NCBI RefSeq assembly: GCF_052425735.1
Contig: NC_135761.1
Coordinates: forward strand, 36,208,001 to 36,272,000
Direction of reading: 5' to 3'
DNA from: Oculina patagonica
Lineage: Eukaryota
DNA: 64,000 nucleotides
In this document: piece by piece, positions 4,978-39,613 of the stretch
Layout of the letters: each line of letters opens with the position of its first letter
How positions within the stretch are numbered: position 1 is the stretch's first letter
Notes under the pieces: generated by a model
The model's database searches: none
What the model saw: the letters and a program-made list of their open reading frames with translations, nothing else
What the model was told of the DNA's origin: nothing
Translations under genes and position numbers: made by a program

Positions 4978-5358
4978 NNNNNNNNNNNNNNNNNNNNNNN
5001 NNNNNNNNNNNNNNNNNNNNNNNNNNNNNNNNNNNNNNNNNNNNNNNNNNNNNNNNNNNNNNNNNNNNNNNNNNNNNNNNNNNNNNNNNNNNNNNNNNNN
5101 NNNNNNNNNNNNNNNNNNNNNNNNNNNNNNNNNNNNNNNNNNNNNNNNNNNNNNNNNNNNNNNNNNNNNNNNNNNNNNNNNNNNNNNNNNNNNNNNNNNN
5201 NNNNNNNNNNNNNNNNNNNNNNNNNNNNNNNNNNNNNNNNNNNNNNNNNNNNNNNNNNNNNNNNNNNNNNNNNNNNNNNNNNNNNNNNNNNNNNNNNNNN
5301 NNNNNNNNNNNNNNNNNNNNNNNNNNNNNNNNNNNNNNNNNNNNNNNNNNNNNNNNNN
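4978..5358. other. Assembly gap
   Basis: Run of N, preceded by low-complexity G/T runs. Confidence 0.99.
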
Positions 5359-6449
5359 GGATCTTACGCTGTAGAATGCACAGTCGATTATAAGAGATAT
5401 TCGATACCCATGTAACTAGTTAATTAACCGTCATTAATAAATGATTTCTCCATTACTGTCAGTTCCTCACTATCAAAATGAATTTGCTATTTATATTGGG
5501 TTTTTTCACATCTGAGTGACAACTTTAAGGATTGCTTTTGAGTTTTTCTTAGGAACCCTTGGTAGCAGGATGTGCAATGTACAAATTAACAAATTTTTCG
5601 TAAAAAAATTAAAAACCATTTAAACTTTATACTATTACAGTGTCACATCTTGCAGTGGGCACTTTCTTCTAAACAGAGCATCTTGGAAATCCACCAATTC
5701 ATTTTTTGTTTGTTTGTCTTATTTCTCATTGGGAATGATGTGTTTCCCTGCAACCTTTCTCATCGTTTTTTTCCTTGTTTTTGATCATTGAAGGCCTTCT
5801 TAGTCAATTGTACCTGTGTAGTAAATGACAACGCTCCTGAGATTAAAAAAAGCATCGTACTTAACAGCTTTGATCAATTCCATTTAATACAGTATTCAAT
5901 GTGTGGGGAATCAAAATTTATTGAAAAATTTAAACTGTTTCTTACCGTAATAAACTAAACCTTGTTAATTTCTTATAGTTGACACCACACTTATGTCAAA
6001 GTGAAACATCTCTAATTTAAAATTGGATTACCTGAACTGCAAAAGTAAGAACCTATTAGGAGATTTGCTTTGTTTTATGCATCTATTATAAAGACTTATT
6101 TAGTTTGTTTTACATATGACTTTAAGTAGTAGTCCAAACCAAGACCTGGTTGGGATTGAAATACCTAGTTATCTGGCTTTAGTCCTGTTCTAACAACTCA
6201 ATAGACTCTCTATCCAGCACTCTGGTTAAAATTTTTTGTACTGTTTCTGTTTGAGTGGTATATGCCTGAGAATTAGCTTGCTGAAACAACAATCTCATTA
6301 TTCTCTTTGCAATGCAAGTACCGGTAAAAGCATGCTTACTAGTGAAAAAATGTTATTTTTTCTCAATCAATGCTTTCAGTTCCTTCTCTCCTTTTTTAGG
6401 CCCCATCATAGTTTTCAGTGTTTTGTTATACAGGATTAAAATTTCCCAT

Positions 6450-7950
6450 TGCCAAAAGGATAAAATAAGCACCAGTTGCTTGATAGTCACTTTAAGTTGT
6501 CTCTTCCCACTGGCCCCTTCTTTTTCTTTCTTCCTCTACAATTTTTTTCCACCAAGCTATTTCACCTGGCTTCATTCGCACAGAAATGTGCTTTAGTGCT
6601 CCTCCATCATACCTGTTGTTGGGCATTTGGAATTATCTGGTCATTGCAGCGACGTTGTGCCTTCTGGTAGCTTTTCTAGTACAACAAAAGGGCTTTCGCT
6701 AGGCAGCCACTCCTTTTTCTCAGCCGTAGCCCAATTCCTGTATGTCTACATCTCCAGTTGACCCTGCTCATTCAGTTTAAAATGGAACGCACAGGGATGT
6801 GGCTGTGCAAGGGTGAAGCCACTACTTAATGTCAAATGTTTTTCTCTGTATACAGTGGATGGAGATGAGGTATAGCAATTGTGTATAACGTTTCTGAAAT
6901 GTTCTGGACAGTGTCATGTTTTCCGTCCTTCTCAGTGCTTTAGCGATCCTGCTAAACATCTGAATAAAAAAATGAATGTTTTTGTGCCTTGGGGTAGGTG
7001 CTTCAAAAATATACAAATGTGTTATCATCATCATAATCATTATTATATTACTATTATTGACTGGTTAACTGCATTTTTAATCAACACTGAAATTACTAAA
7101 AAATTTACCTGACTGATGTCCTCGTGTGTGTCCAACCATAAGATATAACAAACAAACCTATCAATATTTTTTGATAATAATAGTAAAAAAATTAAGGATG
7201 AATTAACCAAAAAAGTAAAGTAGGAACAAGAAAAAATATTGTATTTGTGGAAAAAATATTTTGGAAGCTAACTAAATGAACATTTTTTAAACAATTTAAT
7301 TTTGCATTGTTATAAAAGAGAGTTTTGCTACAGCCCCTTTTTGTTGTCATGCTATCTGTTTTTAAATGCTCACTGTTCAACTCTTTTTAGACAGACACTA
7401 TATTAAATAAACAGTTACAGTTTACTTATTACCATTTTTAAACACTCTGGCCTAAGGATGTGTATGCTCTTACAATTCCTGTAACAGTTATCCAACTGAA
7501 GGTAAGCTCCCCCTCTTTAAATGAAGTAGCAGATCATAATACACATTAGTTTTAATATTAAATCCTATCAGTAGAGGCCTTCATAGAAAGTTGAAATTAA
7601 AACAAAAATCACTTTCACCTTAAAGAGTACCTAAAAGTTCAAGACTCAACATGGAGTTAAGAACATTTGCAGAGTTGAAACAAAATGCCCACTATTTTGT
7701 CTTCCTTGGGAAATAATCATGTTTGCTGTTGCTGAGGCCTTTAAAATTTTCCATTTCATTGTTTTGGAATTCTGTGAACAGCATCTTATGTATCAGCTAC
7801 ATGTATCTTTACATTATATGCAGATACACCTGTACAAGTATCCTGTACATCCATTCACCAGTTCATGGTTTTTCTTTCAAGCTGGAGATGGTCTGCACAG
7901 TTCATGGTTTCTTCAGTGAGTTGATCTGATCTTTCAAAGTTTGAATGTAG
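6450..7950 (-). pseudogene. Decayed, intron-containing Sola1-type transposase remnant
   Basis: Frameshifted YLMVGHT/HEDISQ near 7110-7145, then MFSRIAKALRR...FDIK and HFKLNEQGQLEM*TYRNW...WLP, resembling the Sola1 GHTHEDIDQ.FS region. Confidence 0.55.
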
Positions 7951-8139
7951 TATACCTTACTAAAACATTAACTCAAATAATCAATTGGTGAGCCCAGTAA
8001 ATTAAGGTGCTATAGAATTCCCCTACTCAAAATAGACTAAATACAGCAATATAAATCAGCAATATAAAAAGCTAAAAGATCAAAAGCCTTACCTTGGTTT
8101 CAGTGTAGCTCCTAATGAGTTGGTCTTTGAGGACGCGGT

Positions 8140-9285
8140 TGAATTTAAGGAGAAACTTTCGCTTGTGCCTGCAAGTTGATACAAGCTCATTACGTTTGTT
8201 AATGTTGCCATGTCCGGTTTGTATGAAAGAATTTTTCGGTATTACATAGATTACATCGTTTGGAAAGATTAGTGTAAGATCTGGCCTTGGCTAGAATTTC
8301 CACGTGATTTTAAAGTCTTTCTTATGATCTTTCAGCTGCCATAAATGTTTGCTTAGTTCAGTGTCATTCTTTTTGTTTTCATGTTTAAATGACGTTTGGT
8401 GATTTCGCCACCTCGTTTTGAACTCTGTGGCGGTAAGGCCTACGTACATCTCAGTGCTTTCAGCTGTAGTGATTGTGGCTTGGTATACTACATCTTTGAC
8501 CAAGCACTCTCCTTCCAAAGGGCATTTTTCTGGCTGGCGGCAGTTACATGTTTTGGGTTGTTTTATCAGGAGGCATGTTCTGTCTTAAAACGGTTTTGTT
8601 GTGTCCATCGATGATTTGTTTAACATTAGGTGAACAACTGTAACTCAGCTAAACATTATTTTTGTTGAAAAGTTTTCTTAGTTTATGGTTGGGTGGGAAG
8701 CAGTTCTTGATCAAATATAGAAATTCACTACCTTTGTTGGTTTGTACATTTTTACTAAATGGTAGGTTGAACCATATTATGTTTCGCTGCCTCTTTCTCT
8801 TGTCGGTGGCTTGTTCAGGTGGCTGCTGTTGTGGTGGGTTGAATTTGAGGGTGTATGAATAACTGCTTTTCTGCCTCTTGGTGGGGTGCTGTTGCTTCAT
8901 TGAAGGTTTCCTCGTCTGATGAGATCTCAGATAACCTTTTGGTAATTGCTTCAGGGATGTTTTTTATTATGCTTGGGGGGTGGTTAGATTTGCTGTGTAC
9001 ATAGAGCAGAGTTGTTGTTGGCTTTGAATAAGGCTTGTGCTTTTCAGTGGTTAGGTCTAGTGTTACGTCAAGGAAATTTACGACTTTTTTGTTGGCTTCA
9101 ACTGTGATGCGTAGGTTGTTTTTGGCGAACACTTTGCAGATTTCTTTTTTAATTTTTTCAATTTTTTGCGGGGTTTGGCCCAGGACTGCTAAGCCGTCAT
9201 CTCTGTTAAGCCCAATTTCCATGTCGTAAGGGATTTCTTTGAGCTGTGAGAGTATCTAGTTTCCGACTAATTTGCATGTTTCTGA
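8140..9285 (-). mobile_element. Penelope-like retroelement fragment (RT C-terminus and GIY-YIG endonuclease), degenerate
   Basis: [36 protein letters not shown] and VVYQ...YVGLTATEFKTRWRNH motifs across several frameshifted ORFs. Confidence 0.85.
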
Positions 9286-12200
9286 TCTCTATACATATAT
9301 AAAATATATGCATTACAAAGCCTAAATATTCAGTTAAAAAAACAAGAAAACAAATTCAGTGTCTTTTATGATTAAAACTATGATAACTTGAGAATAGTAT
9401 GTACAGTTTAAAATATTTAATTCCAAATATTTTTTTAAGAACAGTGAAATAAAAAGAGATTTACCAGACATGCAGATTTTTTTCTAGTCTGCTGGCATCT
9501 GTTATATTGACATTCTACCATACTTATTTTATACCTGTACTTAAATTCTGGGTTTCTCATCCTGCTCAAGAGGGACAGTTTTGAGGCAGAGGCCTGCTGG
9601 AAACATGTTGCCCAACAACTTGAGATACCTTGGCAGCAGTTCTCTTCTGTCTGTTTGTCATTCTGGACTGATACGTTTGGTCTAAAACTGCTTTGAGGTT
9701 TTTTTTAATTTCTCTTTCCCACTTTAGTGGCTTTACATGTCTTGGAGGGAGGGGGGGGGGCAGTTGTTTCCTCTCCTTCACCGCTCTCCTCACATAAAGT
9801 TTAACAAGTTTAGAAATCCTACATTGTCCTTCCTTGATCACATTTCACAATAAAAAAAATGAAATTGTAAAACAAAGTTGTTTAATTAATTGATTGACCC
9901 AGAAATGAACTGTATGAAATGTAATTGATTATGACCTCCAACTTTTTAGAATGGTCCAAAAGCAAAAATTGACAGAAAAGAATACCTTGTGGAAGGGCAT
10001 TTACTCCCGCAAACACCTCTTCTGTCAAAACAATCTCTTTTTCCCCAACTGAAACATTGCGCTCAAGGACAAAAATCACTGCTTCCTTTGTCAAATCAAC
10101 AGTGCAATTTCTGGTATAGGGGCTATAAAGGAAGATGTCATTTTCCGATGGAAGATTAATGTCAGTCTTGTTTAAATGAGGGTGGTGTTGATTTTGGACT
10201 ATGGTAGAGGTAACAACTCTGAGGAGGAAAGGTGAGGAAAGAGCTTGCCAATTCCTTGGAGTCAAGAACACGAAGAAGGATCTTAACTTTGACCTGAAAT
10301 GATTCTTCTCTGTACACCTCAAATATGTTTATGTGTGTTAGACACAGCAGCTCATCAACAAGAATTTAAAGGTAATGCTTAAGGTTGAAAGCTTCCTTGC
10401 CATCCGCTTGTGCTAGAATATTACCAACAAGAATTAGAACTACCGGTATTGGCCACATGGAGGGATTTGTTTTGATTTTGCTCCAAGGATTTAAACCATC
10501 CAGACAAAGTGTTGAAAACTGTGAATAATATCCAAAACATGTAAATAAACACTAAAAAAATAAATTCAAAAATACACATAAATAAGAAAAGAAAAACATT
10601 TGATTGGGTCCGAAATTCCAATGGGCCCGAGGCAGGCAGGTAGTGAGTCTGGACCGAACACAACGACGACAGCAAATGCGCAACAGACCGCACACTGCTG
10701 GCCCGCCAGACAGAAGTGCGTGCAGTAGGCGCCACGCACGATAGTGGACGGGAACATACGAGGCCCGAGGCCGAACGCCGTGAGTGCCCAACACCAACCG
10801 CAGCACTGACCCCCTTGAGCAAGGGTACATTTCTCTGTCTCCATTTTCCTAATTCTTAAGTAAAGCTTCGCCCCTTGCAGAGTGAGGCTCCAATTAAGCT
10901 CAATCCTTGAACTTGTCCTCATTTATAGTTGTCATGATGGTGGCACTGGTAAATTTTGTTGGGTTTTCTCGAACCATATTTTGTTTGATAACATTCTGGC
11001 TACACACTAGAGGCAAATTTGTCTGAGGCTGTTCAGGGACCTCCTGGGTAAGCTGCATGTTTAAAAACAATGGCTGGTTAGGCTGTTTGGGACATCCCAG
11101 GGAAAATGATCTATAACTGGATTTAGCAATTGGTTGATGCTTCACACTAATAGCTCTTGGGATTTGTTAATTGTCTTAACTAGGTTAAGAATAATTAGAG
11201 GCCCTTGAGCTAGCATTCCAGGAATATGGAGGTCCTTCTCTTACCACAGCACTGTAAGATGGTTTTGGTAATCGATAACTTACTAATATATCATTTTTCA
11301 TTATATCTAATCCAATTAATGAACCAACCTTTATCACAATGTTGCCCGTATTTTCTTCTTTCACCTCAAGCTGACCGCTGACTGTACAAATATCTTAATT
11401 TGCTAAGAATGTTAAAGGAACAGAAGTTAAAGCATTTGTAGCTGTGGAGTTTCAAAGAGGAGTCAGACTGACGTTATTTGATCTTACTTGCTGAACATTC
11501 CCCCCTGTGATCTCCTGTAGCCTTTGACACTGATATTCTCAGCCGGCTGCATCTCATTAATAGCATCCAGAAGTCTCCTCTCCTTGATTTGATTCTGGCG
11601 TGCCACACTTCTGCCATTTTGAATATAAAATTTCCCGTTCAGATCCAAATCCTTTTTGGCTTCTTGATTATCTGAATTTGGTGGTTCATCAACTTCTCTT
11701 ATTGGGATGGGTGGACTGGAAAAGTGAAGTCACACAACTTCGTCACTACTCATGCTTCCTCTGGTCCTCTTTGCTTGATTAACTGCTTTGGCTTTACCCA
11801 GTAAATTACTGTTATAACTCCTTATGTACTAACAGCTTTCTGGGTCTCAATTACTTTCCGCAAAAACATGCTCCTTCACAGCCTCCCTCTACCATGCTTT
11901 CCCTTCGAATATGTTATTGTCACAACAAGAATTTGGAAACTGGTGCCAATTTAAAATGGAGTGTATAAAGGGCTCGTCTTGGGCTGAAATTGCTTTGAAA
12001 AGTTAGTTTTTCCACCTTAATTAACAAACCATTAAAGAATGAAATAAACTGCAAGTTCAAAATGTGAAGTAATTATACGAATGCTGTGATGTGCTTTACT
12101 CTTAGAAATAGAAATAAAATAGAAATAGCAACAGAATGACAATTAAGCGAAGAGAATCAAAAAACAATTCAAAACAACTATAAGCTCACAACATGCCCCC

Positions 12201-13639
12201 CTCAAACAGCACGTCCCGAGCCAAAAAGAGAAAAAAAAAAAGGAAAATGAAACGAAAAACTGAAAAAAACAAGGAAACACAAAATGAAAAGAACCAAAAA
12301 ATGCCAGTCAACACCGCGCAAACGACCAAAATGCAAAGCCCATCAACACCAGTCCCATGCAAACGGTCAAGACCGGGACAAGAAGGAGGAGGGAGAGGCA
12401 CCCCCAAAACCAAATATACCACAGCACAAAAGAAGAAGAGGAGAAAAATGACATGTAGCTGGCAGAGACAAGGGCCAATGCAACATAAGGCACAGTACCT
12501 TAACTAAGGTGATCAGTGTGGCAGGAGTGCGGTCACGTGACAGCCCAGGCCCAAACTGCAACCCAACCCAAAACAACCCTAACCCCAACAACGTAACCCT
12601 AACCCTAACCCACAGCCCTGACCCGCAACCCAATCCAACACCATATAGGCGCCCAGCCACTCCATGTGTCCGTGACCCATTCCCCCCCCGAGACTGACCT
12701 GGGACAGCGCACGACGGCGAGCTGCCACGGGCCCCCAGGGGAGAGCGGGACGAGGACCGAGGCCGGCCGCGGGAAGGCGCGGGGGAGGGTTCATATTTCG
12801 TTTTCAAAATACAATAATTACCAAATTTCACAATAAATTTAATTAATTCAGTCTAAATAAATACTTTTCCATAAAAAGTCTTAAAAAAGTTTCATAACTT
12901 CTCCTATAATCTCTTTTCCCATTTTATGGACTATCTAGCTCGTCAGGCTCATTTCGCTGTTCCTCGTCGACTGTAGCGAATCGGGACACGTAAGGGAATT
13001 GCCCGTGGGTTCAAGGCCACAGCTAGGGCATAAAAATTAGCTGACTCTTTACTCTCTTTTCTCCACCGTATCCACATTCATCAATTGATGGTCTTCCAGA
13101 GATCCATGCTGTTAGCTAATATATTTACAAAATTGAATTTTTAAATAAATGATGAGTTCTATATGTGTAGGTATATAAAATAAAAGGAGTATTACTAGTT
13201 TGGTTACGCTCAAGGCGTAGACTAGTCAGTTGAGAAGGTGTCAGTTTTGTTCAATTCAGGACGTTGGAGCGACGCTTCCTCTGATTGTTGTTTTGTGCGG
13301 TTTGTTCAGCTCGGATTTTTGTTTGGAGGTTTGCGAGTAGATGCAGTTTCTACCAGGTTGCAGGAGGGTCCTGTTGCTCTTGCCCTGATGATGGCTTTGT
13401 CGATTTTCTGTCCTTAGTCAGATGTGTTTTGAAGTAAGTGTATGTGAGTGGGGAAGAAGTTGTGATTTTGTTCGTGATTTTTTTGAGATCTAGTTTCGGA
13501 AAGTAGGTGCCCGGAGGCTTGTTCTCGTGAGGTGTAGTGATTGTGGTGATATGTTGCTGTTGTGAGCTGCTACTAGGTTTTTTGTCTATGATTTGTTGTT
13601 GAATATGTGTAGGTATATATATATCTTAATATTTGACAA

Positions 13640-16671: not shown

Positions 16672-19600
16672 AATTGCAAGACACAAACAAGTTACATAAC
16701 ATTACATTACATTACGGTAAGAAGCACTACTTACAACCATTACTTACATTACTTAACTACATCACTTACATTATAATGCTTACACAAGGGCGCTACTTAC
16801 ATTACTCTACTTAACAATGCTCTGCTTACAATATGGTGCTTAGATTACTTATACATTGGTGTTTACAACAGTTACATTTTTTCGAAGAACGTTTACCATA
16901 ACGACAGCAAAAGTGAACTTACATCTAAGCTTGAATATAATTGTCCAGAAAAAAAAAAAAGAGAGAAGGAGCAAAGATAAATTACAGAATTTTACCCCAT
17001 AAAGACAAAAATATTTGCAGTTTGTTATTGGCTGTGAAACTTTGTTTTAATATTTGTATATGGTTCTGAAGGCGGAGGAGAAAGCTTTCAAAACATAGTT
17101 TGCCGTCGCATGAGCTTGTTGAGAAGATGTGGTACTTTGCAATGAGGAGAGTGACATTAAGTGCCTGCTTGTTTTGAATATTGTCATGTAATCCGTATAG
17201 GACAGTGCTTTCTGTTAAAGAAATAAGCTGTGTAAATTTTAAAAACCACCAGTTGGTGAATTTTTCCCAGAAAGCTTTAGTTTCAGAACAGTGGAAGAGC
17301 AAGTGGTTTATAGTTTGTTTTTCAGTTTTGCAGAAATTGCATGCAGCACTTTCAGTAATTCCGGCTCGAAAGAGGCTTGATTTAGTTGGTAATATATGGT
17401 GAATAACATTATACTGAAATGCAATTAATTTAGAATCTTTGGTTATCGCAAATGGTAGAGTGTACACTTTGTGGATATTTTCTTTGGTGAAGCCGTAATT
17501 TAAAATTCTGATTTCTGATGTTGGTGGATTCACTTGGTTGATTAGAAGAGCAGAGTAGGCGGTTCGGGTTGACGGGAGGTCCTGAGAGGGGATTACAGTT
17601 TGCAGTAAATTGAATTCATTTCTTAATAACTTCTTCCATTTGGTTGGAATAGCCGAGATGATGCCATAGTAAACTGTGAAAGGAATGTTAATGTTGAACT
17701 TGCGCGAGAGTTCGTCCAGTGAGAGAAAATTTTGATTTTCTTTAAGAAAGTGTTTAACTCGGATGATCTGAGCTTTGAACATGGTTTTGTTAAATATCGG
17801 TCGACCATTAACTAGGATGCAGCTATTATTCCAGATAATTTTATTTTGAATGAGGGATTCGTCTGAGAATTTGTCGGTGTTATATTCTTGCCAATATTTG
17901 AGAAGAGTGTGGTAAAATGGTGGTAGGTTGTCTTGGTGTAGGTACTTGATGTCGTATTGACATTCTGTTAAAAAGGAGAGACCGCCATAGTGCGCAGCTG
18001 CGAATTCTGGGATTACCTTCCAGGCTGCATCGACGTTTTCAGTAATTCGCTTGATCCAAGCAATTTTGAGAGCTTTGTCCATGAGTTCAAAATCCATCAT
18101 CTTTAGACCTCCTTGCTTTATGCTACTAATAATGGTCTTTTTTTTTTATTTTTGCTGGTTTTCCTTCCCATATAAAATTGAATGTTAATTTGTTAATTTC
18201 TTTCACGTAAAACTCAGGAATTTCTAACACAGAGGTGTTGTATATCAGCTTCGATAAACCTAAAGTCTTAACTATTTTTATCCTACCATGCAGAGTAAGT
18301 TTCCTTCTTTTCCATCCATTGAATGTTTTTTCTAACTTGCGGATTTTCTCTCCAAAATTCAAATTATTTGCTTCATCGGCATTGTAGGAAAAGAAAACAC
18401 CGAGGGCTCGGATCGGTTCTTGGGGCCATCTGAAGTTGTATGGTGTATCCGTTTTGTTTCTCCAGGCGCCTAGCCACATTGCCTCTGTTTTGCTTGTATT
18501 GATTTCTAGACCGGAGGTATGTTTTGATCACTGAGACTTGATCGTTTACAAACACCGTGGTGTCGTCTGCGAATTGCGTAAGTTTTATTTCTTTCTTGCC
18601 GACGTTGATGCCTTTGATGGACTCGTTATTTTTCAAGGCTCTTGCGAGAAGTTCAATGCCGATCACGAAAAGGACACCTGATAGTGGGCATCCTTGCCTG
18701 ACGCCTCGATGCAATTGAAAAAAAGGCGAAGCGTGACCGTTGTTCAGGACACAGCTGGATACATTTTGATAAATAACTTCTATCCATCTTTGAATGTCTG
18801 GTCCGAAATTAAACATTTTGAGTGCAGATAGCAAGTAGTTCCATTCAATTGTATCAAAAGCTTTTCGAAAGTCTAGAAAAATAGCAATTCCAGGTAAGTT
18901 CGCATTTTTCGTAAAAAAATAACATCTTGAATCAGTCTAATATTTTCACCTATGTAGCGACCCTTCACATAACACGTTTGGTCGGGGTTGATAATTTTAG
19001 GCAAAACTTTTTCTAGTCTCTTCGCAATGACTTTTGTAAGTATTTTATAGTCTAAATTTAGTAACGAGATCGGTCGCAAGTTCTCTAATAAGGATTTGTC
19101 TTTGTCTTTTTTGGGAATGAGAGAAATTACACCGCGTCGTTGACTAATCGACAGTGATCCGGTTTGAAAGGCGAAATGAAAACTTGACAACATTTCAGAT
19201 CGTAGCTCGGGCCAAAAGAATTTGTAGAATTCTACAGGAAAGCCGTCGGTTCCTGGCGTTTTGTCTTTTTTAAACCCGTTGATTGCATTTAGACATTCAG
19301 CTTCCGTGATGGGACCGTCGCATAACTGTTGTTCGTCGTGTGATAATGGTGTTACATTTTCGGCTTTAAAAAACGAGGACTCTTGGGAGCTGGTATTGTC
19401 GGTTTCTTTGGATTGGTAAATTGATTCGTAGAACTTTTTCTGTTCGTTTAGAATTGCAAATTGGTCGTAAATATATGTGTCGTTTATTTTTAGTTTGTGG
19501 ATGGTTTTTTTGGTTTGACTACGTTTTTCTAAGTTGTAAAAATATCTGGTGTTGCGTTCGCCTTCGTCGTACCATCGTACTTTGCTTCTAAGGATTGCTC

Positions 19601-20520
19601 CTTTTGTCTTAAAGTGCATTATTTTTTGTAAGCGCAATTTGGCTGCATATAGGTCATTTAAATCATGATTATTTTTCGGATTGTTTGCCAATTTTTGCTG
19701 AAGTTCATTTATTTTGTTTTGAAGTTCTACTTCTTCACTTTTGCGTTTTTTTGCTTTCGTTTTAGCATACTTGACTGTAAAACCTCGTATTTCCATTTTT
19801 AACAGATCCCATTTCAAGCCTTTGTCGTCAATGCTTTCATATTTGGTTTTATACACATTCATGTTTTTGCGTAGATCATTAACATAATCTTCATCTTTTA
19901 GTAGTGAAGTGTTAAACTTCCAGAATCCCGGGCCCCTCTTTTGTTTGTTGATTTCAGCTTGAAGGTGTAATGAGATCGCAGAGTGATCAGTTTCTGGAGC
20001 ATGAAAAATTTTATTGGACGCGACAATGCTTGTGAGCTCTTCTGAGATTAGGAAGAAGTCTAACCTGCACTGAATTTTGTGTGACTTGTTTCTCCAAGTA
20101 TAAGATTCTAATTCGGGGTTTAAGCGACGCCAGACGCACTTCAATTTCTTTGATTGAATCTCTTCAGTGTTAATTTAATATGCTGAACCTTTCTGTAAAT
20201 GCGGTTCATTTAATTTATTTCGAACTAAATAACAAACAGCATTTTACACTCTTGCTAACCCGTCGATCGACTCAACATTGAAATTAAATGGCGCGCGTAT
20301 ACAAACAAAGATTTTGTGACACAATCTTTCTAGGTTTCTTTTAAAAACAAATAAAGTGGGAAAAAAATAAAAACGTTATTCACCAGCCTAGGTCGGTCCG
20401 TATTGGGAAAAACTGTGCCCTTGGTCTTGGAACCGCCCGAGGCCGCAGGCCGAGGGCGGTATCCAAGACCTCGGGCACAGTTTTTCCCAATACGGACCTC
20501 CCGGCTGGTGAATAACCTAT
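15830..20520. mobile_element. Non-autonomous element with palindromic end (Crypton-like), split by the LINE insertion
   Basis: CTGATTGG/GAGCGGGCGGTATT motif near 15860-15920 and a long hairpin at 20376-20518. Sequence on both sides of the LINE TSD is contiguous. Confidence 0.5.
16644..20137 (-). mobile_element. 5'-truncated L1/Tx1-clade LINE (end of endonuclease, RT, C-terminal Cys/His region), frameshifted
   Basis: ORF pieces contain YTW...RLDFFL, PGTDGFP, LRPISLLN, GVRQGCPLS, QFADDT and CNFC...HLLFHC. The poly-A tail appears as poly-T at ~16641-16671. TSD ACTTCAATTTCTTT at 16630-16643 and 20138-20151. Confidence 0.92.
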
Positions 20521-21586
20521 ATTTAAGTGATGTTCTTCCAAGTAATATTGTCAAACTTGAAAACTTTGGCCAGACGTTTTAAAGTTTAAGCTACTACAGT
20601 CCCATCCATCTGTATCCAAAGCAGTTTTCATGACTAGTACAGTTTGTTAGAGCAAGGCCAGTCCACTATTAGATTTCCAATAAATACCAACACCTTCATT
20701 GCATTTCTAAGTAGCACTTAATTCTTGTTACACTGTCCTTACAAATTTAATAAACACTCACATAAGTTTTAGTGAGGAAATGATTACAGAAGTGATGAAA
20801 AACTGCAGATTGTACTTTGCCATAAATTAAAAAAATATCATAGAGGAATGTAATTATTATTCAGGCATACAGTTTACAAGACTTGCTAGCTTTTTACATG
20901 TCCTCTCGATAAAAAACGTGTAACTGAAACTTTCAATAGTTTGGTTTGGTAAGTAAATTTGGCCACCATACCACTTCAAGTTCACATGTAGCTCTTTCTT
21001 CTCTCTCCTTGCAAATCACCTTGCAGAAAGTCTGTCAAATGAGCAGACCTTGGCATCACTTTTCTTTCTTCCATAGACGCACCTGCTCTGGCAACAGAAG
21101 TGCTACTAATGTTCTACTTAACCAATACTTTCTCCAGCAGTTCAAGACCTTTATTGTGCAGCCTTTCAGGTAGTTTTCAGTCATAAAGAGATGAGTACTT
21201 AAAAGTATTTCCGTAATCATTTAAGTACCTCTCAAAGCCATTCAGAAATGATGGAAGCGACATTTTTCATTGTCACATGTAGAGGCTGCTCCTTTACATT
21301 CTTGTATCCCTTTCATGCTTAAACACCTAAGTTCGTCTGTGCTGCTTGAACCGTGTTTTACTACTTGTAATTTGGTTCTGGAGTTATCCTGGCAGAGTAG
21401 CATCTCAAACCTGCCACAAGTTTTCAAGGGACAAAAAAGCCTGAAGTAAGACAGAAGATTGGAAATTGCGTTACTCCAGACATCCTCCACACGTCTTTCG
21501 TTGCATCAGTGGAATTTGAACTTTTCTCTCCCCAAGGAAAGGTCCAGCCAGCAACTTGATATTGTACATTTTGTATGAAATCTTAA

Positions 21587-22478
21587 GAGACAGATTCTGA
21601 ATTTTTCGAGAATCGTCCGACAGAAAGGGAATTTCAATTTTATTTTTATTTGCCCCAAATAAACCTTTTAGTAAACTATTTTCGAAAATGACATTAAACG
21701 GTTCAGTTTCCTTTAACTTTTTTTAAAATTTAGAAAAGTTAAAAATTCGAAAAGCACATCCACCGTGGCGACCATTTTGGATGAAATTTAAGGTGTTTTC
21801 ACGACACTCGTGTATACATACCAAACAACTACTCAGTATACCCTTTACACAGCTGTTTAGGTATCTCTTAAAGTTTATTTTCAGATATATTTTGTTTGAA
21901 AATATCACGTTTAAGAAAAGTTACGATCTTCGACAACCGACCCATTTCTAGAACATAAACGACAGGGCGAATATTAGCTAACTTCAAGATTGTCAAATGC
22001 GGTCTGGTATATTGTTTTGGAGTTAAAAAACAACACCAAATTGAAGCTAAACCTTTCTTCGCTCTGTCTGAAAAATATTACTGGTAGCCCGTAAAAACTG
22101 TTCCGCTGAGAGAATTAACCATAAAGGCTATTTTCGCTCTGACTCTCTCTATTTATAGTAACTATTTGTGAATTTGTCCCGAAATATAATTCTTCCTAGC
22201 GGCTTTTGTACCGTAAAGATCCCGATTAATGCCACGAAAGAACTTGAACGTTTAAACAGGTTTTAAAATTCAGTGTGCATCGGTCTTGGTAGTTGCCCTA
22301 GTATGAAAGAACAGCTTTCGTTGCGGGATTAGTAATTAGGAAGATGTACGTTTCGGTCTCGACATTCTGTCTGGATGTGAACGGCGTGGTATAAATTAAA
22401 TTAAAGGCAAATCACGATTCTCATAGATAGAACAAAATAAAACATAATCCGACCCAATTTACTTAAAACATGTTCATG
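21587..22478 (+). repeat. Left terminal inverted repeat of the Sola3 element
   Basis: Reverse complement of 29173-30064; about 5 substitutions seen by eye over 892 bp. Confidence 0.95.
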
Positions 22479-23124
22479 CTACAAAATCCTTACGTGTGAG
22501 AGCGTGATATGATGGATAAATTTATAGAAAAGAGCCACAACTAATCATGAAACAGGAAATATTATCTGTTTGTTTATTTCCGCTTCAATAACTTGAGAAT
22601 TAGTTAAGGCATTTGTTACTGCGTAGCCGTCCTGCTTTCTTTTCACATCGGTCAAAAGAATGATCATTTATGCTAAAAAAAAGTTGAATCGATCGATTTT
22701 ATATGAAGAAAAAGAAAGTGACAAAATCCTTCGATACAACGATTTTCCGTAAACATTGTCATCACGCAAAATTTGTCATTCACAAACATCGTCTTCATTT
22801 CCTCGACTTTAATTTAAATACTTCATTTTCAGGCAGATGATTATAAAGCTTTAACACGTACCTTAATTCTTCCGCAGTGCATAAAATGAAAAGGACCCGC
22901 TTCTCGCCGATTATTAATTAGAGGGAAGGGACTTTTACACCTAAAAGTTTTTTGTGTTGCGTGACAAAAACGCCAAAATACATGCATAGTTAATTAGATT
23001 CAGGAAAACAGTACGCAATGTTTTTACGCTGTGGTCACATTTCGCAGAATTTTTACTCTTTTTTGTGATCTACTTGTGAATGTTTTTTAACAACAAATAC
23101 TTTTCGATATTATTTCTCGCCATT

Positions 23125-26100
23125 ATGGCGTGCTGTAGCTATTCGGAATTGGTGAGTGGGGATTGTGGATCAAGCCTTGATAACCCAACTAACATCAAAT
23201 GTGTTACTTTACGCGAGTGCACGAAGGAAGTCTACAGTCACCTAGTTTTTTGCAAAGTTAGCGACGACAGCGAGATTGATACTGAATGGAAGTTATTGCT
23301 TGCAAGAGCAGGTAATGTGCAAAATTCGATGTATAATGAGACTCATTTTTACAATATTTCACACTAACAATAATTCCGCCGGCAACAACAAGGAAATAAT
23401 ACCAAGTTTGTTGTTGTTTAGGTGTATTTGAAGTTGATGAATCTCACCTAGCAATGAACATATGCCCTCGTCATCGGGACTTGTTTGGTGTGCGCTGGAG
23501 GTCTTCTAAGACAAACTGCACCATACCAGATGAAATAGCTTCCCACAAATCAAAAGCGAAAGGCCTTTGTGGTTTACGGAGAAAGCAGTCACAATTTGTC
23601 TACCACAGAACCCAAAAGCTTATTCCAGTAGGGTCCAGTGAGTACCATGATGTTTTAAAGAAAACCATATATACGTACTAATTCAGTGGTGTTGTTTTAA
23701 AGTTAACCATATACACGTGCTTATTCAGTGGTTCAGTTGACCTGTTGACGGTTTAATTAAAATCCGGACAACAGACGATACAGCGCCTGATCATTGTAGT
23801 CCAGTCTTAACTCCTGTCACCCTGGCAATGTTATTATCACACCAATAGGAAAATTTAAATATCCGTTATATATCTAAAATTGTTTTTGTACTTTATTAGA
23901 AATTTGCAAGCGATGTAAAGAGCATCTCACAGGAAGTTTGAGCATTGACGTAAGCTTTCAAAGTTTTCACGATCAGCCAGAGCTAGTGACACCAAATGTG
24001 ATAGAGGAGCCCACTCCAAAGTCTCTAACAATTAAGGTAAGAATTTGAACAAACGGAATAATCATGCCTAACAGAATGATAGTTGTTATCTTAAGGCCAT
24101 TTTCAGTGACAAATTAATATATCAACCATGATAATAAAAAGAGGAGCTTAACGCGGTTTTCTTTCTCATTTGCAGGCACGTAAAGAAGTCTCAAGCTCGT
24201 CATCTGATGAATTAACCGAAGGCATCAGGGGCATTAAAATTACTGACGAGAGCTACTTACTTTCCTCTGATGCTGGAAGCGAGGTGTCATCAACAACCGA
24301 TGCGAGTGGGGCCTCTTCTGACGATTGCGCTCGCCGTCAGAAATTAAACGTGTTCTTAGAGGAGTGTGGAATCCAACCACTTGGAAGGGCGTGGCTTGCA
24401 TGGCGTGAAATTAGCGAGAGAACAAAAGAGAGATATCTGAAGCAGACATCAGAGATCGTGTCCTCAGTGCTTAGGGTAATTTCTTCAGAAAACTCCCCTG
24501 ATCTGTGGAAAGAACTGCAATCTTCATGCATTGTGAACGATATGCTGGGCATAAGTCAAACAACTCTTCCCTCCGAGGTGGCCTACTTGGAAGCTCTTGC
24601 GGAGGCGTACAAATTGGCGAAGAGCTGGGATACCCGCCGACAAGTATTGTCTACCATGGCTGGTGTGGCAAGTTTTAAGTCTATTTCAGAATATATCCCA
24701 GGGCTCACACGATACCGTTTTACTATGGCTAACCTGCATGGCCTTCAGCATGGCCGGGGCGCCCAAGTCCCAAAGAAGAGCACTCCACATTTTCGAATAG
24801 ACAGACAGCAGCTTGACCACTTTCTAAGTTTCATCACGAGCCCACATTTAATTCAGGATCTGCCTTTTGGGGAGAAGCACTTACAGTTGTCGAATGGGAA
24901 AGTGCTAACAGTGCCGAACGTAATCCGCACTATGATTCCCAGTCGAATTGTGTTGCAGTATAAGCGTTTTTGCGCCGAAAGCAATTTCAAGCCATTTAGC
25001 GATAGCACTATGCTTCGAGTGTTATCCGAATGCAGTGCATCAGTGCGAAAGTCGCTACAGGGTCTCGATTATTTAGCAGCTGATGGTTCACGCGCCTTTG
25101 ATACCCTGGCAGAGATAATAGAGGTAGTCTCCTCCAAAGCAGATGGCGGCAAAAAGTGGGCAGATGAGATGCGAGAGACTCTAAAAGAGGGAAAATTTTA
25201 TTTGAAAGGAGATTATAAGGTAAGGTTTGGCCTAGTCAGTTCCGGACTCTTTCTAGTAAGGGCGAGCGAAAAAGCGAACTTTTCCCAACCTCGCATCTTC
25301 GCTCACCACCAACTATTGATAGCCTGGAATAGACTATTTTCCAGGTAAATACACATCTCATACATATATGTTTGGATTTATCAAAACCAGGTCAAGGAAA
25401 GTTTCACCGTTTTAAGGGCTAGTGCAAATCGCTGTAAACGCGTTTTTTCTCGCCAGAATCTCCAAACTCGATGATATAAAAACTAAAGGGAATGTCAGTC
25501 TTTTTTTCTCTTCTCCTCTCTCTTCTCTACCTTTCAGCGCTGTATTTCTTTTTTTTTTCCTTTCTTGTGGCGTTTTAAGCCAATTCCCGCAGTAACGTAC
25601 TTTTTCAAGAATACTGACGTCAGACATATATATATCCATTGTTTGACTGTAGGTTCATGTTAATGATCAGTCACATGTGGCAGACCATTGTACTGTGTTC
25701 GCTTTGAGTGACAAATCTGATGCAGACTTCAGAAAGGAGTGTGACCACAGTCACGACGAGGTATGTGACCAATGTGAGGCCCTCAGTGCTGCAATAGAAG
25801 ATATCAAGAGAGTTGTTCAGAATGCTGCTTTTGATTCAATTGACGACAAAGAGGAGTATTTATACCTGTGTCACACCGCTGCGCATGCAATACAAGCGTG
25901 GAAATGCCACCAGTTAAGATCCGTCCGTCAAGACCAGGCTCGCCTAGATGTAATTGAAAGTTTAAATGAAGAAAGAGTGTTTATAGTGAGTGATTGGGCG
26001 ATGAAATTTCTTCCACAAATGTTTCGAGAATCCCAGCAAGATTGGTTTGGTAAAAGGGGGATATCTTGGCATATCTCTGTTGTGTTTCGTCGCCTAAGTG

Positions 26101-28084
26101 GTGTTCTACAGTCACAAGCGTTTGTTCATGTAATCCAATCTTGTTCACAAGAAAGCCACGCTGCTGTGATGATAATGCAGCACGTTCTGCAAACGCTGAA
26201 AATTGAACACCCAGAGGTAACCCAGGCATTCTTCCGCCAAGATAATGCCGGGTGTTACCACTGCTCCAACACAGTCTCGTCTCTAGCACAAATGGAAAGG
26301 GTGGTTGGCATCAAAGTTATAGGCGTGGATTTCAGCGATCCTCAGGGTGGCAAGGGGCCAGCTGACAGGCTTGCTGCCACCTGCAAATGCCACATCAGAA
26401 TTCATATTAACGAGGGTCACAATGTAACAACCGCACAAGAAATGAAAGAAGCTTTGCTCTCACATGGAGGAATTGCAGGCGTAAGAGTAGCTGTAATACC
26501 TTGTATAGAGGAGCCCTCGGTGCTGGAGCAGAAGATACCTGGGATAAACAAGCTTAACAATTTTGCATTCACTGACGATGGGCTCCTGGTCTATCGCGCT
26601 TACGGCATTGGGCCAGGCAAAAGCCTCAGTTTGCACACCGACTCAGGTAAATGGTTTACATAGTTCGTATTATTATTTAAAGAACAAGGACGGCAGCAAT
26701 CATTTTACATTTAATCTGTAACAAATTAGATACACATTTACGGCACTGTGGACAGTCGTTTTTCACCCTTGTGTAAACACGTGTTCTTACGCGGGGACTG
26801 CGCAAGAAAAATTTGAGTGGGGGGGGGGGTGGCTGAAAGTCGAACCCTGGAGTGACTCAACTTAGGGGGGTCGGTAGGAGGACAGGGGCATGCTCCCCCG
26901 GAAAAAAAATAAAAAAATAACGCTACTCACTGACCTTCAGGGTCAGCATTAACTTTTTTTTTTAATGTTAGTAACTGCCGTTACTTTCGTCCTTTACAAA
27001 CTAAATCAATAATATGGCTTCCAGAAACAAAATATTTTCAGTGATTTTTCGTTTGTTTTTTATTCATTATATTTTTTTCTGTTACTGTAAAAAAGTGGGG
27101 GGGGGGGGGGCTAAAGCCCCCTGGCCCCTCCCTTTGAACGGTCCCTGTTACGTTTGCTGTTCTTTGTTGACAGGCGCTGTTACATCCATCTCCACTCCAT
27201 TTTCTGCTGGTGACTTCAAAGAAGTGGCGCAGAAGCCAGTTAATACGCAAACCCATTGCTCTACATCTGAGGCGGCCGAAAATGTCCAGGAGTCAGATTC
27301 AGAAGGATCTGGAGAAGCTGCTGTGTTTTCCTGCCCGCAAGAGGGGTGTGTTCGCGTTTTTCAGCGACTTTCCTCGCTTGAAAAACATCTTTCACTTGAA
27401 TCTTGCACCAAAACACTGGAGAGACAGTCTTTATCAGACATCGCTAAGATAACGTATGCCTCTCTGCTGCAAGAAGGCGCGGCACCGATTCCAAGTACGT
27501 GTCCCACGTCTACTGAACACCGCGTTGTTTCCTCGTTTATTCTTTCAGAAGGTTGGGCCCTTAGAGCCCCAAAAAAATCCTACAGATTTAATACAAAACA
27601 GAAGGAATATTTGGAGGCCAAGTTCAATGTTGGTCAAGTTACTGGAAGAAAAGTGAATCCCGATGTTGTCGTTAAAGACATGCGACGCGCAAGAGACGAG
27701 GGCGGAGAGAAACTTTTTTCTAGTTCCGAATTCCTAACGGTCCAACAAGTCACTTCGTTCTTTTCCCGTCTTGCTGCAAAAAGGCGACAGCAATTAGCCA
27801 CTGAAGAAGACGTATGTGCAGCAACAGAAGAGGAAAACTTTTGTACGGCAAGAGAATCTGTTCTGTCGTCCTTAGATCTGCAACATCCGATAACATATGA
27901 CCAATTCAACATTTGTGCATTGGTCCGGGAGAGCAAGCTCAATAAGTTAAAAGTTGCTATGCTTCAAGTAATTTGCGAAGCTCTCAATTTGGAAACACCT
28001 GTACCAGCCGTCAAGAGAAAAGCTCCTTACACAGCTTTGCTGGTTGATGCCGTAAGCAAGTGTTCCTGTAGCGACACTGGTTGA
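23125..28084 (+). CDS. Sola3-type DDD transposase, 6 exons (23125-23311, 23422-23637, 23900-24036, 24176-25219, 25653-26646, 27174-28084), 1,162 aa
   Basis: All five introns are GT-AG with matching phases (1,1,0,0,1). The spliced length is 3,489 nt with no internal stop. Catalytic-type motifs VSDWAMK, RQDNAGCYH and GKGPADR are in exon 5. There is an N-terminal Cys/His cluster (ICPRH...ICKRC) and a C-terminal zinc finger (CPQEGC...H). Confidence 0.85.
26792..27147. mobile_element. Small non-autonomous element (MITE) inside intron 5 of the Sola3 transposase
   Basis: Imperfect TIRs CGGGGACTG...CGGTCCCTG, internal G-runs, flanked by the 5-bp direct repeat TTACG (26787-26791, 27148-27152). Confidence 0.6.
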
Positions 28085-29172
28085 GTTGACGTCATCCATG
28101 TCATGATTGTTATCATAATAGTCGTCCCTAGAAATTAACTGTTTTGTTGTGTTATATGACACTGTGTCATCTGACAAGATTTAGTAGAATACGTATTTTC
28201 ATATTATGAGGCCCGAAGTATTACTTTTTCAAACCTATTTTATACCCCACCTGTTTCTCCACTGATCTGCCTATTTTTATGCCTTTTTTATCGAGAAGGT
28301 GGTGGTAAGAGTGGAGGGTGATCGAATTTTGTATGAATTTTACCAACTGGTGCACCCTCTCATTGGGAGATTAAAATGTAATTTAGATTCCATTCGCTTT
28401 GCCCCGCCGCACCTCCCCTGAGGGAAGTTTGTAGGGTGATCAGACGCAAGGGAAATTACCGTGACTGGGGCTGTGTCACGTAATTGCATTCCGTGAGTTT
28501 GCGCGCGAACAAACGGTTGGTAACAATATCACACACCAGGTGCTGTTTATAGAAATGTTATATAGTGCAGAATCGTTTCACTTGTTAAAACGTCGAGTTT
28601 GGAGACATTTCTGCCGCCCAGTTGATCATTTCTAGCGGTTGTTTAGTTTGGTTGGTTAGGAACATTGTAGACATTTATGTAAGTATATTGTGTGTACATT
28701 TAAGAAGTAATATTTATAATTTATGATCACAAACAAGCCGCAGTTTCGTTACTATTTATGTTAACACCGAGGTTATCTTTGCATTTATCGTGATGGTTAA
28801 TTCAGTTATTTTTAAACAGCAAAGGTTCAGGACGAGACAAATGCAAATATTAGCCGTCACGAAACTGGAAGTTTTAAATTCGTTTGAGTCACGTCCAGTA
28901 GGGTCAGCAATGTTCAAATAAATACGTTCCCCCTTAAAGAAAATAATGTTAAACATTAATAGATTTAAGCACATAAAAGGTGATTTTAACATCACACAAC
29001 CGTAGTTTTGCACAATAAGACAACCTGAACTATCATTGAAGGGACGCAAATGTTTACTTTTCTCTTTTCCTTCTGTAAACACGCCGACGGTTTGATTTAT
29101 TCCCGGGTAGTTTTTCTGTGATTTAATTAAGATAAAGAAATACTTACGCTCCCATCATTAAGGACTTTATAC

Positions 29173-30064
29173 CATGAACATGTTTTAAGTAAATTGGGTC
29201 GGATTATGTTTTATTTTGTTCTATCTATGAGAAGCGTGATTTGCCTTTAATTTAATTTATACCACGCCGTTCACATCCAGACAGAATGTCGAGACCGAAA
29301 CGTACATCTTCTTAATTACTAATCCCGCAACGAAAGCTGTTCTTTCATACTAGGGCAACTACCAAGACCGATGCACACTGAATTTTAAAACCTGTTTAAA
29401 CGTTCAAGTTCTTTCGTGGCATTAATCGGGATCTTTACGGTACAAAAGCCGCTAGGAAGAATTATATTTCGGGACAAATTCACAAATAGTTACTATAAAT
29501 AGAGAGAGTCAGAGCGAAAATAGCCTTTATGGTTAATTCTCTCAGCGGAACAGTTTTTACGGGCTACCAGTAATATTTTTCAGACAGAGCGAAGAAAGGT
29601 TTAGCTTCAATTTGGTGTTGTTTTTTAACTCCAAAACAATATACCAGACCGCATTTGACAATCTTGAAGTTAGCTAATATTCGCCCTGTCGTTTATGTTC
29701 TAGAAATGGGTCGGTTGTCGAAGATCGTAACTTTTCTTAAACGTGATATTTTCAAACAAAATATATCTGAAAATAAACTTCAAGAGATACCTAAACAGCT
29801 GTGTAAAGGGTATACTGAGTAGTTGTTTGGTATGTATACACGAGTGTCGTGAAAACACCTTAAATTTCATCCAAAATGGTCGCCACGGTGGATGTGCTTT
29901 TCGAATTTTTAACTTTTCTTAATTTTAAAAAAAGTTAAAGGAAACTGAACCGTTTAATGTCATTTTCGAAAATAGTTTACTAAAAGGTTTATTTGGGGCA
30001 AATAAAAATAAAATTGAAATTCCCTTTCTGTCGGACGATTCTCTAAAAATTCAGAATCTGTCTC
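29173..30064 (-). repeat. Right terminal inverted repeat of the Sola3 element
   Basis: Reverse complement of 21587-22478. Confidence 0.95.
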
Positions 30065-31759
30065 TTAATTGTGCTAGCTTTCCAGGTAGTTTCCGCTTCT
30101 TTCAAAACACTAATTTCTGAAGGTATTATTGCAGAAAGTTTAGGTTGGTGTTTCCTTTCATTTTCTTTTAACAGTTCCCCTATTACCTTCTGTGTGCAGA
30201 GTGTTAAGACCGGTGTTTGATTAACGGTTATGTGGTTAGGACCAACTACCCTTTGCAGTCATCTGTAAGCTTTCCACTGGTCTGAGTACACCAAAGAACT
30301 TAATTGCACTTTTCTGTGAATAGGTAGCTGTATTTCACCTTCTCACAAGCTGTACATAAGGTCTAGCAGGTAAATACTACATGTTAAATACCCAAGAACC
30401 CACTTTTTTGTTTTCTTTTTAAGGTTGATGTCCCCTATGGTACTAAAGAATACAAACAAAAGTTAACGATGAAAAAAGAATTCCATACTCATATTTTAAT
30501 GGTCAGGTGAATTCGTTCCTGTTAAACAAATGTTCAACAGTGACTAGATTATCGCAAGGCTGCGGTAATCTTGACAGATGTTTTGAAAGTTGTGGAACAC
30601 CTTTTAAACGAAACTATTGTAAGGAAGTTTTAAGAAAGTTATTTACTAGGATTATGTTGTCAAATGGACCACCCTACATTTGAACATGAATAGGATCATG
30701 GGAGCGAATCTTTGTGATTTCCTCTATCACCAATGTATCTTGCAAAGTTGCTTCTGGTTTGAAAATTAGTTTTTGCTCAGATTGGAAGAGGCAGGTTTTA
30801 CAAGGCTTCAGTGGTCATTGTGACTTTTCTCCCAACGAAAACTCATTGTCCCATTTATGGTAATTATATTCCTGCTCATGTATTGCAGGGCTGGATGCTG
30901 GCCCATTAAGGCAACAGAGCTTTTTAAATATTTTTTCAATTTTTTTAGGATTGCCTTTTTGATTTTTTATATTAAAACATAATATATACAAATGTACAAA
31001 ACATGCAGTATTGTAGTATTGGAAGAAGAGGGCCATGATGTTATCCCAATTTCGACATCTTTGCCTGGAAGATCAGGTTTAAAAAATGATTTGATTAAGT
31101 ATGCAACGCCTAATTTGCGACCAAAGGCGATTTTTGATTTGTTTTTAAAAATCATTGCTTCATTACAATTTGCCCTCGTCTTTTCAACATGTTTAGGTCA
31201 CACCCATATTTTTGTCTTCTATTACTGCAGCATATGCTTTAATTTTAGTCGCTCATAGGTCCACTTGATAGGCCCCATGTAATGACATGTTCGCATTATT
31301 ACATTGCCCCTGACCATCATGGATCACCTCTGCTTGGTTCATTTGAGGTCCACTGTTATGCACAAAGGAACAGAAAACGAATCCTTTCTTGTCATGCCAT
31401 CTTCACAACAAATGTGATTAACTTATCTTTTGAATTTGAAATTCTTCAATGCTCAAGATACAAGCAAAATGAGCTGCTACAATAGAGTCTGCAAAATTAC
31501 TTGCACAATGGGAGAATTTCAAGTTTGAAATGGCGGAGATGACATTTTTTGAGAAGCTCATCGCACTGATGTTTAAAACCTTTTGAATCCATTTGCCTTT
31601 TTGTTTCTATGATCTTTGAGGTGGAATTCACATGTCTTGATCCTGGATTTAACAGCTTCGCTTTAAACGGAGCACAGTCCAGTAGATTCTTAAACCAGAG
31701 TAAACAGTGAAATATGATGTTAAAGTTATGTCAACATGGTGGATCGTTAGGTGACAAAA

Positions 31760-38640: not shown

Positions 38641-38806
38641 ACACTGCCGCTTCACACCACTAAAGACACCACACTTGTTTTTGCAATGAAACATGGAGTG
38701 GTCGCCGCCACTCACAGTACAGTTGTGAGTTCTCTAAGACATATCGAATTGGAGTTTGGTTTTGCAAACTACCTTTGCAAAATATAGTTGTAGCTATCTA
38801 ATTTGA

Positions 38807-39613
38807 AAGATCTTGACTTCGCCGACGACATTGCCCTTCTTTCACATAACCACAGGAGCATGCAATCCAAGCTAACAAGACTGGCAAAGATCTCAATGCA
38901 GACGGGCCTTAGGATCAGCAAATCCAAGACAAAGGTGATGAGGGTTAACACCAAGGATGCAGATAGGATAGAACTAGATGAGGATGAAATCGACGAGGTG
39001 GAGGACTTTGCGTACCTTGGAAGTAACATCAGCAAGGACGGTGGATCTGATCAGGACATACGAGTGAGGATCGGAAAGGCAAGAACTGCATTCACCATCT
39101 TGACACCTGTTTGGAGATCAAAAGTGATTTCCAGAAAGACCAAACTACGGTTATTTAATACCAACGTAAAGTCAGTCCTCCTTTACGGCTCTGAAACGTG
39201 GAGAGTAACAAAAGCGAACTCCGCCAAACTGCAGACCTTTATCAACAAATGCCTGAGATCCATCATGGGCATCCACTGGCCAGAGGTCATAACAAATGAA
39301 GAGGTTTGGACAACAACTGAGCAGGAAAGGATCAACATCCAGATAAGAAGGCGAAAGTGGGGTTGGATTGGGCACACCCTCAGGAAAACAAACTGCAATG
39401 TCACCAAGCAGGCACTGAGATGGAACCCACAGGGGAAGAGGAGCCGAGGCCGTCCTAGAAACAGCTGGAGGAGGACGGTAGATGACGAGGCGAGCAAAGC
39501 AGGCTACACCTGGAGGCAGATTGAAAGGACAGCCCAAAACAGAACACGGTGGCGAGCAGTGGTTTCCGTGGACCTATGCTCCATGGGGAGCGAAAGGGTT
39601 TAAGTCAGTCAAG
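38807..39613 (+). mobile_element. 5'-truncated RTE-clade LINE fragment (RT C-terminus)
   Basis: DLDFADDIALL, YLGS, WIGHTLR and WNPQGKRSRGRPR motifs; short TAAGTCAGTCAAG tail; 12-bp TSD TATCTAATTTGA at 38795-38806 and 39614-39625. Confidence 0.92.

Follow-up and report, generated by a model that had tools for sequence, protein, structure and literature searches.

Which kind of mobile DNA occupies positions 21587 to 30064 of a 64,000-nucleotide stretch of the Oculina patagonica genome (RefSeq assembly GCF_052425735.1, contig NC_135761.1, positions 36,208,001 to 36,272,000 of the forward strand; this whole stretch is referred to below as the window), and could it still move? A preliminary description made from the sequence alone had read the segment as an apparently intact, recently inserted Sola3 transposon with terminal inverted repeats of about 0.9 kb (here called arms) and a six-exon transposase gene, and had suggested that it might still be mobile. 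The Sola superfamily, with its Sola3 group, was reportedly described by Bao, Jurka, and Kapitonov in 2009, and Sola enzymes are said by the same authors to be of the DDD type, that is, with three catalytic aspartates. Very probably, the window element is an autonomous Sola3-group DNA transposon whose structure is complete, and it belongs to a young family with several copies.

The assignment begins with the catalytic core of the transposase. Majorek et al. 2014 classified RNase H-like cores, and their supplement lists those of the Repbase element Sola3-1_HM and of C. remanei CRE_08425 under family E.13, with Sola1 as E.10 and Sola2 as E.12 (PMC3985635). The catalytic core of the window protein agrees with both E.13 cores block by block, and all three short patterns drawn from these two published cores, a comparison made at the level of motifs and not with a scored profile, matched the protein (residues 642 to 668, 725 to 731, and 754 to 762). 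Core patterns of Sola1 and Sola2 found no match in the same protein. The Sola3 cores share the string D[YW]..K.[LI]P....E.Q...[FY]GK.G.S.H, then DNA..YH, then a third block containing GK, and the group has in common with the window element an all-aspartate triad, duplication of the 4-bp target TTAA, and a transposase encoded by several exons. Sola3 elements occur in cnidarians and amphioxus, the reference Sola3-1_HM being from Hydra, and no feature of the window element contradicts membership. With the reference-core motifs, the TTAA target, GAG/CTC ends, and long arms all present, the Sola3 assignment of the preliminary description is upheld.

Relatives of the enzyme are numerous and nearly all uncharacterized. 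When the catalytic exon served as the query of an exhaustive HMMER search, 3,592 of them were returned, those with named hosts belonging to corals, sea anemones, amphioxus, and a crinoid; two bear automatic retrovirus-related Pol names, and the AlphaFold DB clusters of relatives carry uninformative names only. In alignments, the window protein is 39% identical to an amphioxus protein (P0006) and 45% identical to one from Nematostella (P0005). No Pfam model reached the threshold in searches with each exon and with the full protein, and a PDB sequence search with the window protein gave nothing meaningful.

The limits of the element are sharp. Its ends, read directly, enclose 8,478 bp and have the form 5'-GAGACAG...CTGTCTC-3', and the TTAA immediately outside each terminus makes the duplication perfect, as had been claimed. 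Homology among the copies described below ends precisely at these termini. An inverted-repeat search, which located the arms independently, returned a single pair (21583 to 22505 and 29146 to 30068, 99% identity), and global alignment of the left arm with the right one turned the earlier estimate of about 5 differences in 892 positions into exactly 5 mismatches, at arm positions 21, 145, 284, 753, and 831. Past position 892, the similarity of the two sides in the alignment drops off fast. The outer 543 bp of the arm is its best-kept part between subfamilies (87%). A search of the arm for subterminal direct repeats as candidate binding sites found none that were convincing. In the 3' internal noncoding segment, a check of unspliced frames for a second gene met only frames that were stopped in the sister subfamily or gave short alignments, a result that leaves room for a small spliced gene. 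By DNA and protein searches, the window contains no second copy of the element and no fragment of one, and Rfam had no match over its whole length. Neither the window nor the fetched loci showed a paralogous empty site, with the two flanks joined.

We rebuilt the transposase gene without the coordinates of the preliminary description, from stop-free segments, tblastn comparison with full-length relatives, and enumeration of frame-compatible GT..AG pairs. The outcome was the same stop-free structure of six exons and five phase-consistent GT-AG introns with good consensus, encoding 1,162 amino acids followed by a single terminal stop. An O. patagonica protein in GenBank (KAL9977402.1) is identical to the rebuilt product over all 1,162 residues, and the RefSeq protein XP_078364087.1 equals it plus 15 N-terminal residues, starting at an alternative in-frame ATG at 23080; two public annotations therefore picked the same five junctions. 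For the junction between exons 4 and 5, the models of a damaged paralogue give another version; the one adopted here is backed by unbroken alignment to the amphioxus and Nematostella proteins. Against the sister subfamily, the exons of the window copy are 91% identical and its introns 61%, the pattern expected for genuine exons. The gene itself is already known, in that public annotation carries the window transposase as a hypothetical protein. Coordinates of the element and its parts are collected in Table 1.

Table 1. Parts of the Sola3 element, in window coordinates
Feature	Position	Strand	Evidence
TTAA target-site duplication, left copy	21583-21586	.	Read directly
Whole Sola3 element	21587-30064	+	Inverted arms, end reading, homology limits in other copies
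Left terminal inverted repeat, 892 bp	21587-22478	+	5 mismatches in 892 positions against right arm
Exon 1 (residues 1-62, Cys-rich N-terminal domain)	23125-23311	+	tblastn and splice enumeration
Exon 2 (residues 63-134)	23422-23637	+	tblastn, splice pairs, homologue alignment
Exon 3 (residues 135-180)	23900-24036	+	Splice pairs, homologue alignment
Exon 4 (residues 181-528; disordered Ser/acidic linker, then conserved helical domain)	24176-25219	+	tblastn, alignment, full-length model
Exon 5 (residues 529-859; His/Cys cluster, long helix, RNase H-like catalytic core, β domain)	25653-26646	+	HMMER relatives, alignment, AlphaFold (AF2) model
Predicted catalytic D642 codon (first Asp, on β1, motif SDWAMKFLP)	25992-25994	+	Conservation in alignments A1 and A2
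Predicted catalytic D725 codon (second Asp, after β4, motif DNAGCYH)	26241-26243	+	Conservation in alignments A1 and A2
Predicted catalytic D766 codon (third Asp, start of α4, motif GKGPAD)	26364-26366	+	Conservation in alignments A1 and A2
Exon 6 and stop codon (residues 860-1162; C2H2 zinc finger at 27326-27397, conserved helical C-terminal region)	27174-28084	+	
3' internal noncoding segment	28085-29172	.	82% identity between subfamilies, against 61% for introns
Right terminal inverted repeat, 892 bp	29173-30064	-	Inverted-repeat search and arm alignment
TTAA target-site duplication, right copy	30065-30068	.	Read directly

Conservation of the enzyme was read from two alignments, one of 60 catalytic exons (A1) and one of 43 full-length proteins (A2). 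Each of D642, D725, and D766 is present in at least 90% of the sequences of both, D766 being invariant in A1 and the other two in A2. K762 is invariant or almost so in both alignments, and a His/Cys cluster upstream of the triad (H540, C541, C558, H562, C566, C569, and H614) is equally conserved. The spacing is D(82)D(40)D, with 40 residues separating the second acidic position from the third, a short interval like that of integrase and Tc1/mariner enzymes. The AlphaFold (AF2) model of exon 5, with a predicted local distance difference test (pLDDT) score of 92.4, has the canonical order β1-β2-β3-α1-β4-α-β5-α and places the aspartates on β1, just past β4, and at the start of the next long helix. 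D642, D725, and D766 are clearly predicted to be the DDD catalytic triad of a compact, integrase-like RNase H fold. The core has no insertion domain of the kind found in piggyBac, hAT, or Kolobok enzymes.

Searches of solved structures with Foldseek and VIA-align both put retroviral integrase cores first (Z scores of 10 to 11.8), next Mos1 and Metnase (Z score of 9.7), and, lower, Hermes (Z score of 8.2), Sleeping Beauty, and Tn5. Integrase and Tc1/mariner cores are the closest solved folds (Z scores of 9.6 to 11.8), but the window protein has no detectable sequence similarity to these enzymes and differs from them in its flanking domains, its target site, and the structure of its element. For the remainder of the protein, the full-length model (pLDDT of 76) suggests a Cys-rich N-terminal domain (residues 1 to 152), a disordered Ser/acidic linker (153 to 227), a helical domain (228 to 530), and, after the catalytic region, a small β domain (805 to 853), a C2H2 finger (911 to 934), and a conserved helical C terminus.

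The element is one of several copies. At least seven loci belong to the window family, and at least seven genes of O. patagonica listed as "uncharacterized protein" are transposase genes of one family. Four near-identical copies, each with its own flanks, have TTAA beside the same GAGACAG/CTGTCTC ends: L003, on an unplaced contig, whose left end is lost to the contig start; L004, on CM126642 at 33.46 Mb, which is 98 to 99% identical to the window copy; L007, on CM126648 at about 2.34 Mb; and another full-length copy, L008, on CM126643 at 11.57 Mb. L007 (positions 4459 to 12926 of the fetched locus) is a second coding-intact copy, and its 1,162-residue protein (KAL9950403.1) is 99.05% identical to the window protein. 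It lies antisense inside the span, presumably in an intron, of a host gene for a 1,749-residue multidomain protein with F5/8 type C, TSP1, C-lectin, fn3, and ion-channel domains.

A sister subfamily, about 83% identical overall, was found in ENA assembly ERZ25067872, where three insertions (L001, L002, and L005) have TTAA beside GAGCGAG/CTCGCTC ends. The two complete sister copies (L001, 4669 to 13903; L005, 4231 to 13919) have arms of 1.41 kb that contain sequence present only once in the window copy, in its 3' internal segment at 28414 to 29145; arm length therefore changed between the subfamilies. More distant are L009 in O. patagonica (protein 54% identical), with TTAA, GAGCTAT ends, and 0.88-kb arms, and L010 in Branchiostoma belcheri (protein 41% identical), with TTAA, GAGCAAA ends, and 1.1-kb arms. 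In all, TTAA stands beside GAG/CTC ends at no fewer than 8 further insertions in four lineages, and the complete ones, at least 6, have arms of 0.88 to 1.41 kb. In the data examined, a TTAA target, GAG/CTC ends, and arms about a kilobase long are common to the whole clade. The L010 arms (5875 to 6771 and 12727 to 13562) carry internal tandem subrepeats of about 185 bp, seen as staggered inverted-repeat pairs. O. patagonica also holds at least 5 to 6 more Sola3-like transposase lineages at 32 to 56% identity (proteins P0301, P0302, P0303, P0309, P0321, and P0341), several of them in clusters of 3 to 23 members.

How recently this copy was inserted can be approached through the five close copies (the window copy, L003, L004, L007, and L008), compared over 8,263 ungapped columns. 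Pairwise identity is 98.65 to 99.18%, and the copies form a star: in 211 columns there is a change private to one copy, and in 6 a change is shared. The family is young, multicopy, and star-like. The window copy has 61 private changes (0.74%), L007 has 47, L003 has 40, L004 has 35, and L008 has 28; having the most, the window copy is not the youngest of the five. "Recently inserted" therefore describes this copy only in a relative sense, given its private changes and an arm identity that is partly due to homogenization (see below). The full reading frame is kept in two of the five, the window copy and L007. Exon 4 of L003 is interrupted by a 345-bp insertion after the position matching window position 24440, L004 is frameshifted by two 1-bp insertions and has a 1.18-kb insertion after the position matching 28671, and L008 lacks about 150 bp of exon 6 (151 to 156 bp by alignment). 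The 345-bp and 1.18-kb insertions are probably nested mobile elements.

Selection on the transposase can be followed at two depths. Between the window copy and the sister subfamily, the ratio of nonsynonymous to synonymous divergence (dN/dS) over exons 4 and 5 is 0.11 at a dS of 0.32, so the transposase was kept functional by purifying selection. Among the private changes of the window copy, the frequency is 0.36% in exons versus 1.07% in other internal sequence, about three times lower (Fisher P = 6e-4), and the exon changes comprise 6 synonymous and 6 replacement substitutions. The broken copies L004 and L003 had no such exon deficit. These figures suggest that the window copy acquired some of its divergence while its lineage was still under selection, i.e., still transposing.

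Arm identity is a poorer guide to age. The arms differ by 13 to 20% between subfamilies and by only 0.6 to 3% within any copy, and a 133-bp tract of the window copy (21998 to 22130 in the left arm and 29521 to 29653 in the right) holds four private changes that each arm has at the mirrored place, at the pairs 21998/29653, 22061/29590, 22086/29565, and 22130/29521. Mirrored changes of this kind are a signature of conversion between the arms. Because the arms evolve in concert, their identity is no simple clock and the insertion is not cleanly dated; the five unpaired differences can show no more than how long ago the arms were last homogenized. Concerted evolution of long arms is a warning against dating DNA transposons by the identity of their arms.

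Other origins for such an element can be weighed against this evidence. A Kolobok-superfamily transposon would have TTAA duplications and 5'-RR...YY-3' termini (PMC9587614), and the TTAA and GA...TC ends of the window element fit that description, a likeness in duplication and in purine-rich/pyrimidine-rich termini that does not separate Kolobok from Sola3. In Kolobok, hAT, P, MuDR, and Dada, a C/DxxH motif comes after the second Asp and before the last acidic residue (PMC9587614), but the corresponding stretch of the window enzyme, residues 726 to 765, is only 40 residues long, not the long segment of Kolobok enzymes, and contains neither CxxH nor DxxH. The window protein also has no THAP or other Pfam domain, its core matches the Sola3 reference motifs, and its structural neighbors are integrases and mariner, with Hermes lower, so that we regard a Kolobok origin as very improbable. 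Still less credible is a divergent transposon of the piggyBac type, the classical family with TTAA specificity. The strict TTAA target, the 4-bp duplication, and cut-and-paste movement by an RNase H-like DDD enzyme are the points of likeness, the duplication being the only one that speaks for this origin. In piggyBac enzymes, a large insertion domain separates the second Asp from the third, and piggyBac termini are CCC/GGG; the window element, in contrast, has GAG/CTC ends and arms of about 0.9 kb, its D(82)D(40)D spacing is too short for such a domain, and its transposase is unrelated at the family level. No part of the protein has a Pfam match, which excludes PF13843 (DDE_Tnp_1_7), and the 50 best matches listed by each structure search include no piggyBac structure. 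In agreement with the preliminary description, the protein thus groups with neither of these superfamilies. Equally hard to credit is a host gene domesticated from a transposase and no longer part of a mobile element. Its annotation as an ordinary protein-coding gene and the purifying selection between subfamilies would fit, but the gene lies between near-identical arms and a TTAA duplication, and near-identical copies, some of them broken, occupy other loci with different flanks.

As for mechanism, the zinc-finger and helical domains at the two ends of the transposase probably recognize the long arms, and the compact RNase H-like core, with D642 on β1, D725 after β4, and D766 on α4, would excise the element and attach its 3' ends to target DNA at TTAA, with joining points staggered by 4 bp, so giving rise to the TTAA duplication. 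The likeness of the arms may be maintained by some form of arm-to-arm homogenization. We further speculate that the family is still active, in which case cut-and-paste movement specific for TTAA would have evolved independently a second time, in Sola3, on the basis of a compact integrase/mariner-like core and not of the piggyBac architecture, with the arms kept identical by transposition-coupled or intramolecular conversion. This is possible but doubtful. Its arm-conversion part draws on the mirrored 133-bp tract and on arms that are 97 to 99.4% alike within copies yet 13 to 20% apart between subfamilies.

The chief competitor concerns only mobility: the window element may be a genuine, intact-looking Sola3 copy that is nevertheless a dead or silenced relic of a burst that is over, its movement blocked by private substitutions or by host silencing. 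We give this about an even chance. It fits with the window copy having the most private changes of the five, six replacements among them, with three of the five close copies already being broken, and with no pair of copies exceeding 99.2% identity. On the other side, no damage is seen in the reading frame, in any of the ten splice sites, in the catalytic residues, or in either terminus or arm, and the exon deficit of private changes points to a lineage that was selected during part of its divergence. Several points weigh against the fuller reading of an autonomous Sola3 transposon. Membership is motif-level agreement with two reference cores and not a placement by a Repbase-inclusive profile or tree. 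The use of TTAA, GAG/CTC ends, and long arms to define Sola3 follows the preliminary description, together with their observation in four lineages here. Mobility of the window copy would be a candidate property only. Any of its six private replacements (A152V, N436S, K581R, S712I, S981F, and A1026V) could impair function; none of them falls on a conserved alignment column.

We know of no Sola transposase that has been tested biochemically. With an intact gene model, defined ends, two coding-intact copies, and predicted catalytic residues, the window element is a good candidate for the first Sola3 activity test. If it were active, it would allow comparison with piggyBac on TTAA specificity achieved by a different architecture and on the seamlessness of excision.

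The neighborhood of the element is rich in retrotransposon remains. Two open reading frames (ORFs) of 372 and 423 codons lie at 16982 to 20144 on the minus strand and one of 266 codons lies at 38803 to 39603 on the plus strand; these three encode reverse transcriptase-related domains (zf-RVT, RVT_1, and DUF6451), and a further ORF of 280 codons in the window had no family match. The transposase gene had been described as the only long intact reading frame in the 64 kb; the gene is intact, but with these four ORFs it is not the sole long one. A run of 381 N at 4978 to 5358 marks an assembly gap or a masked stretch.

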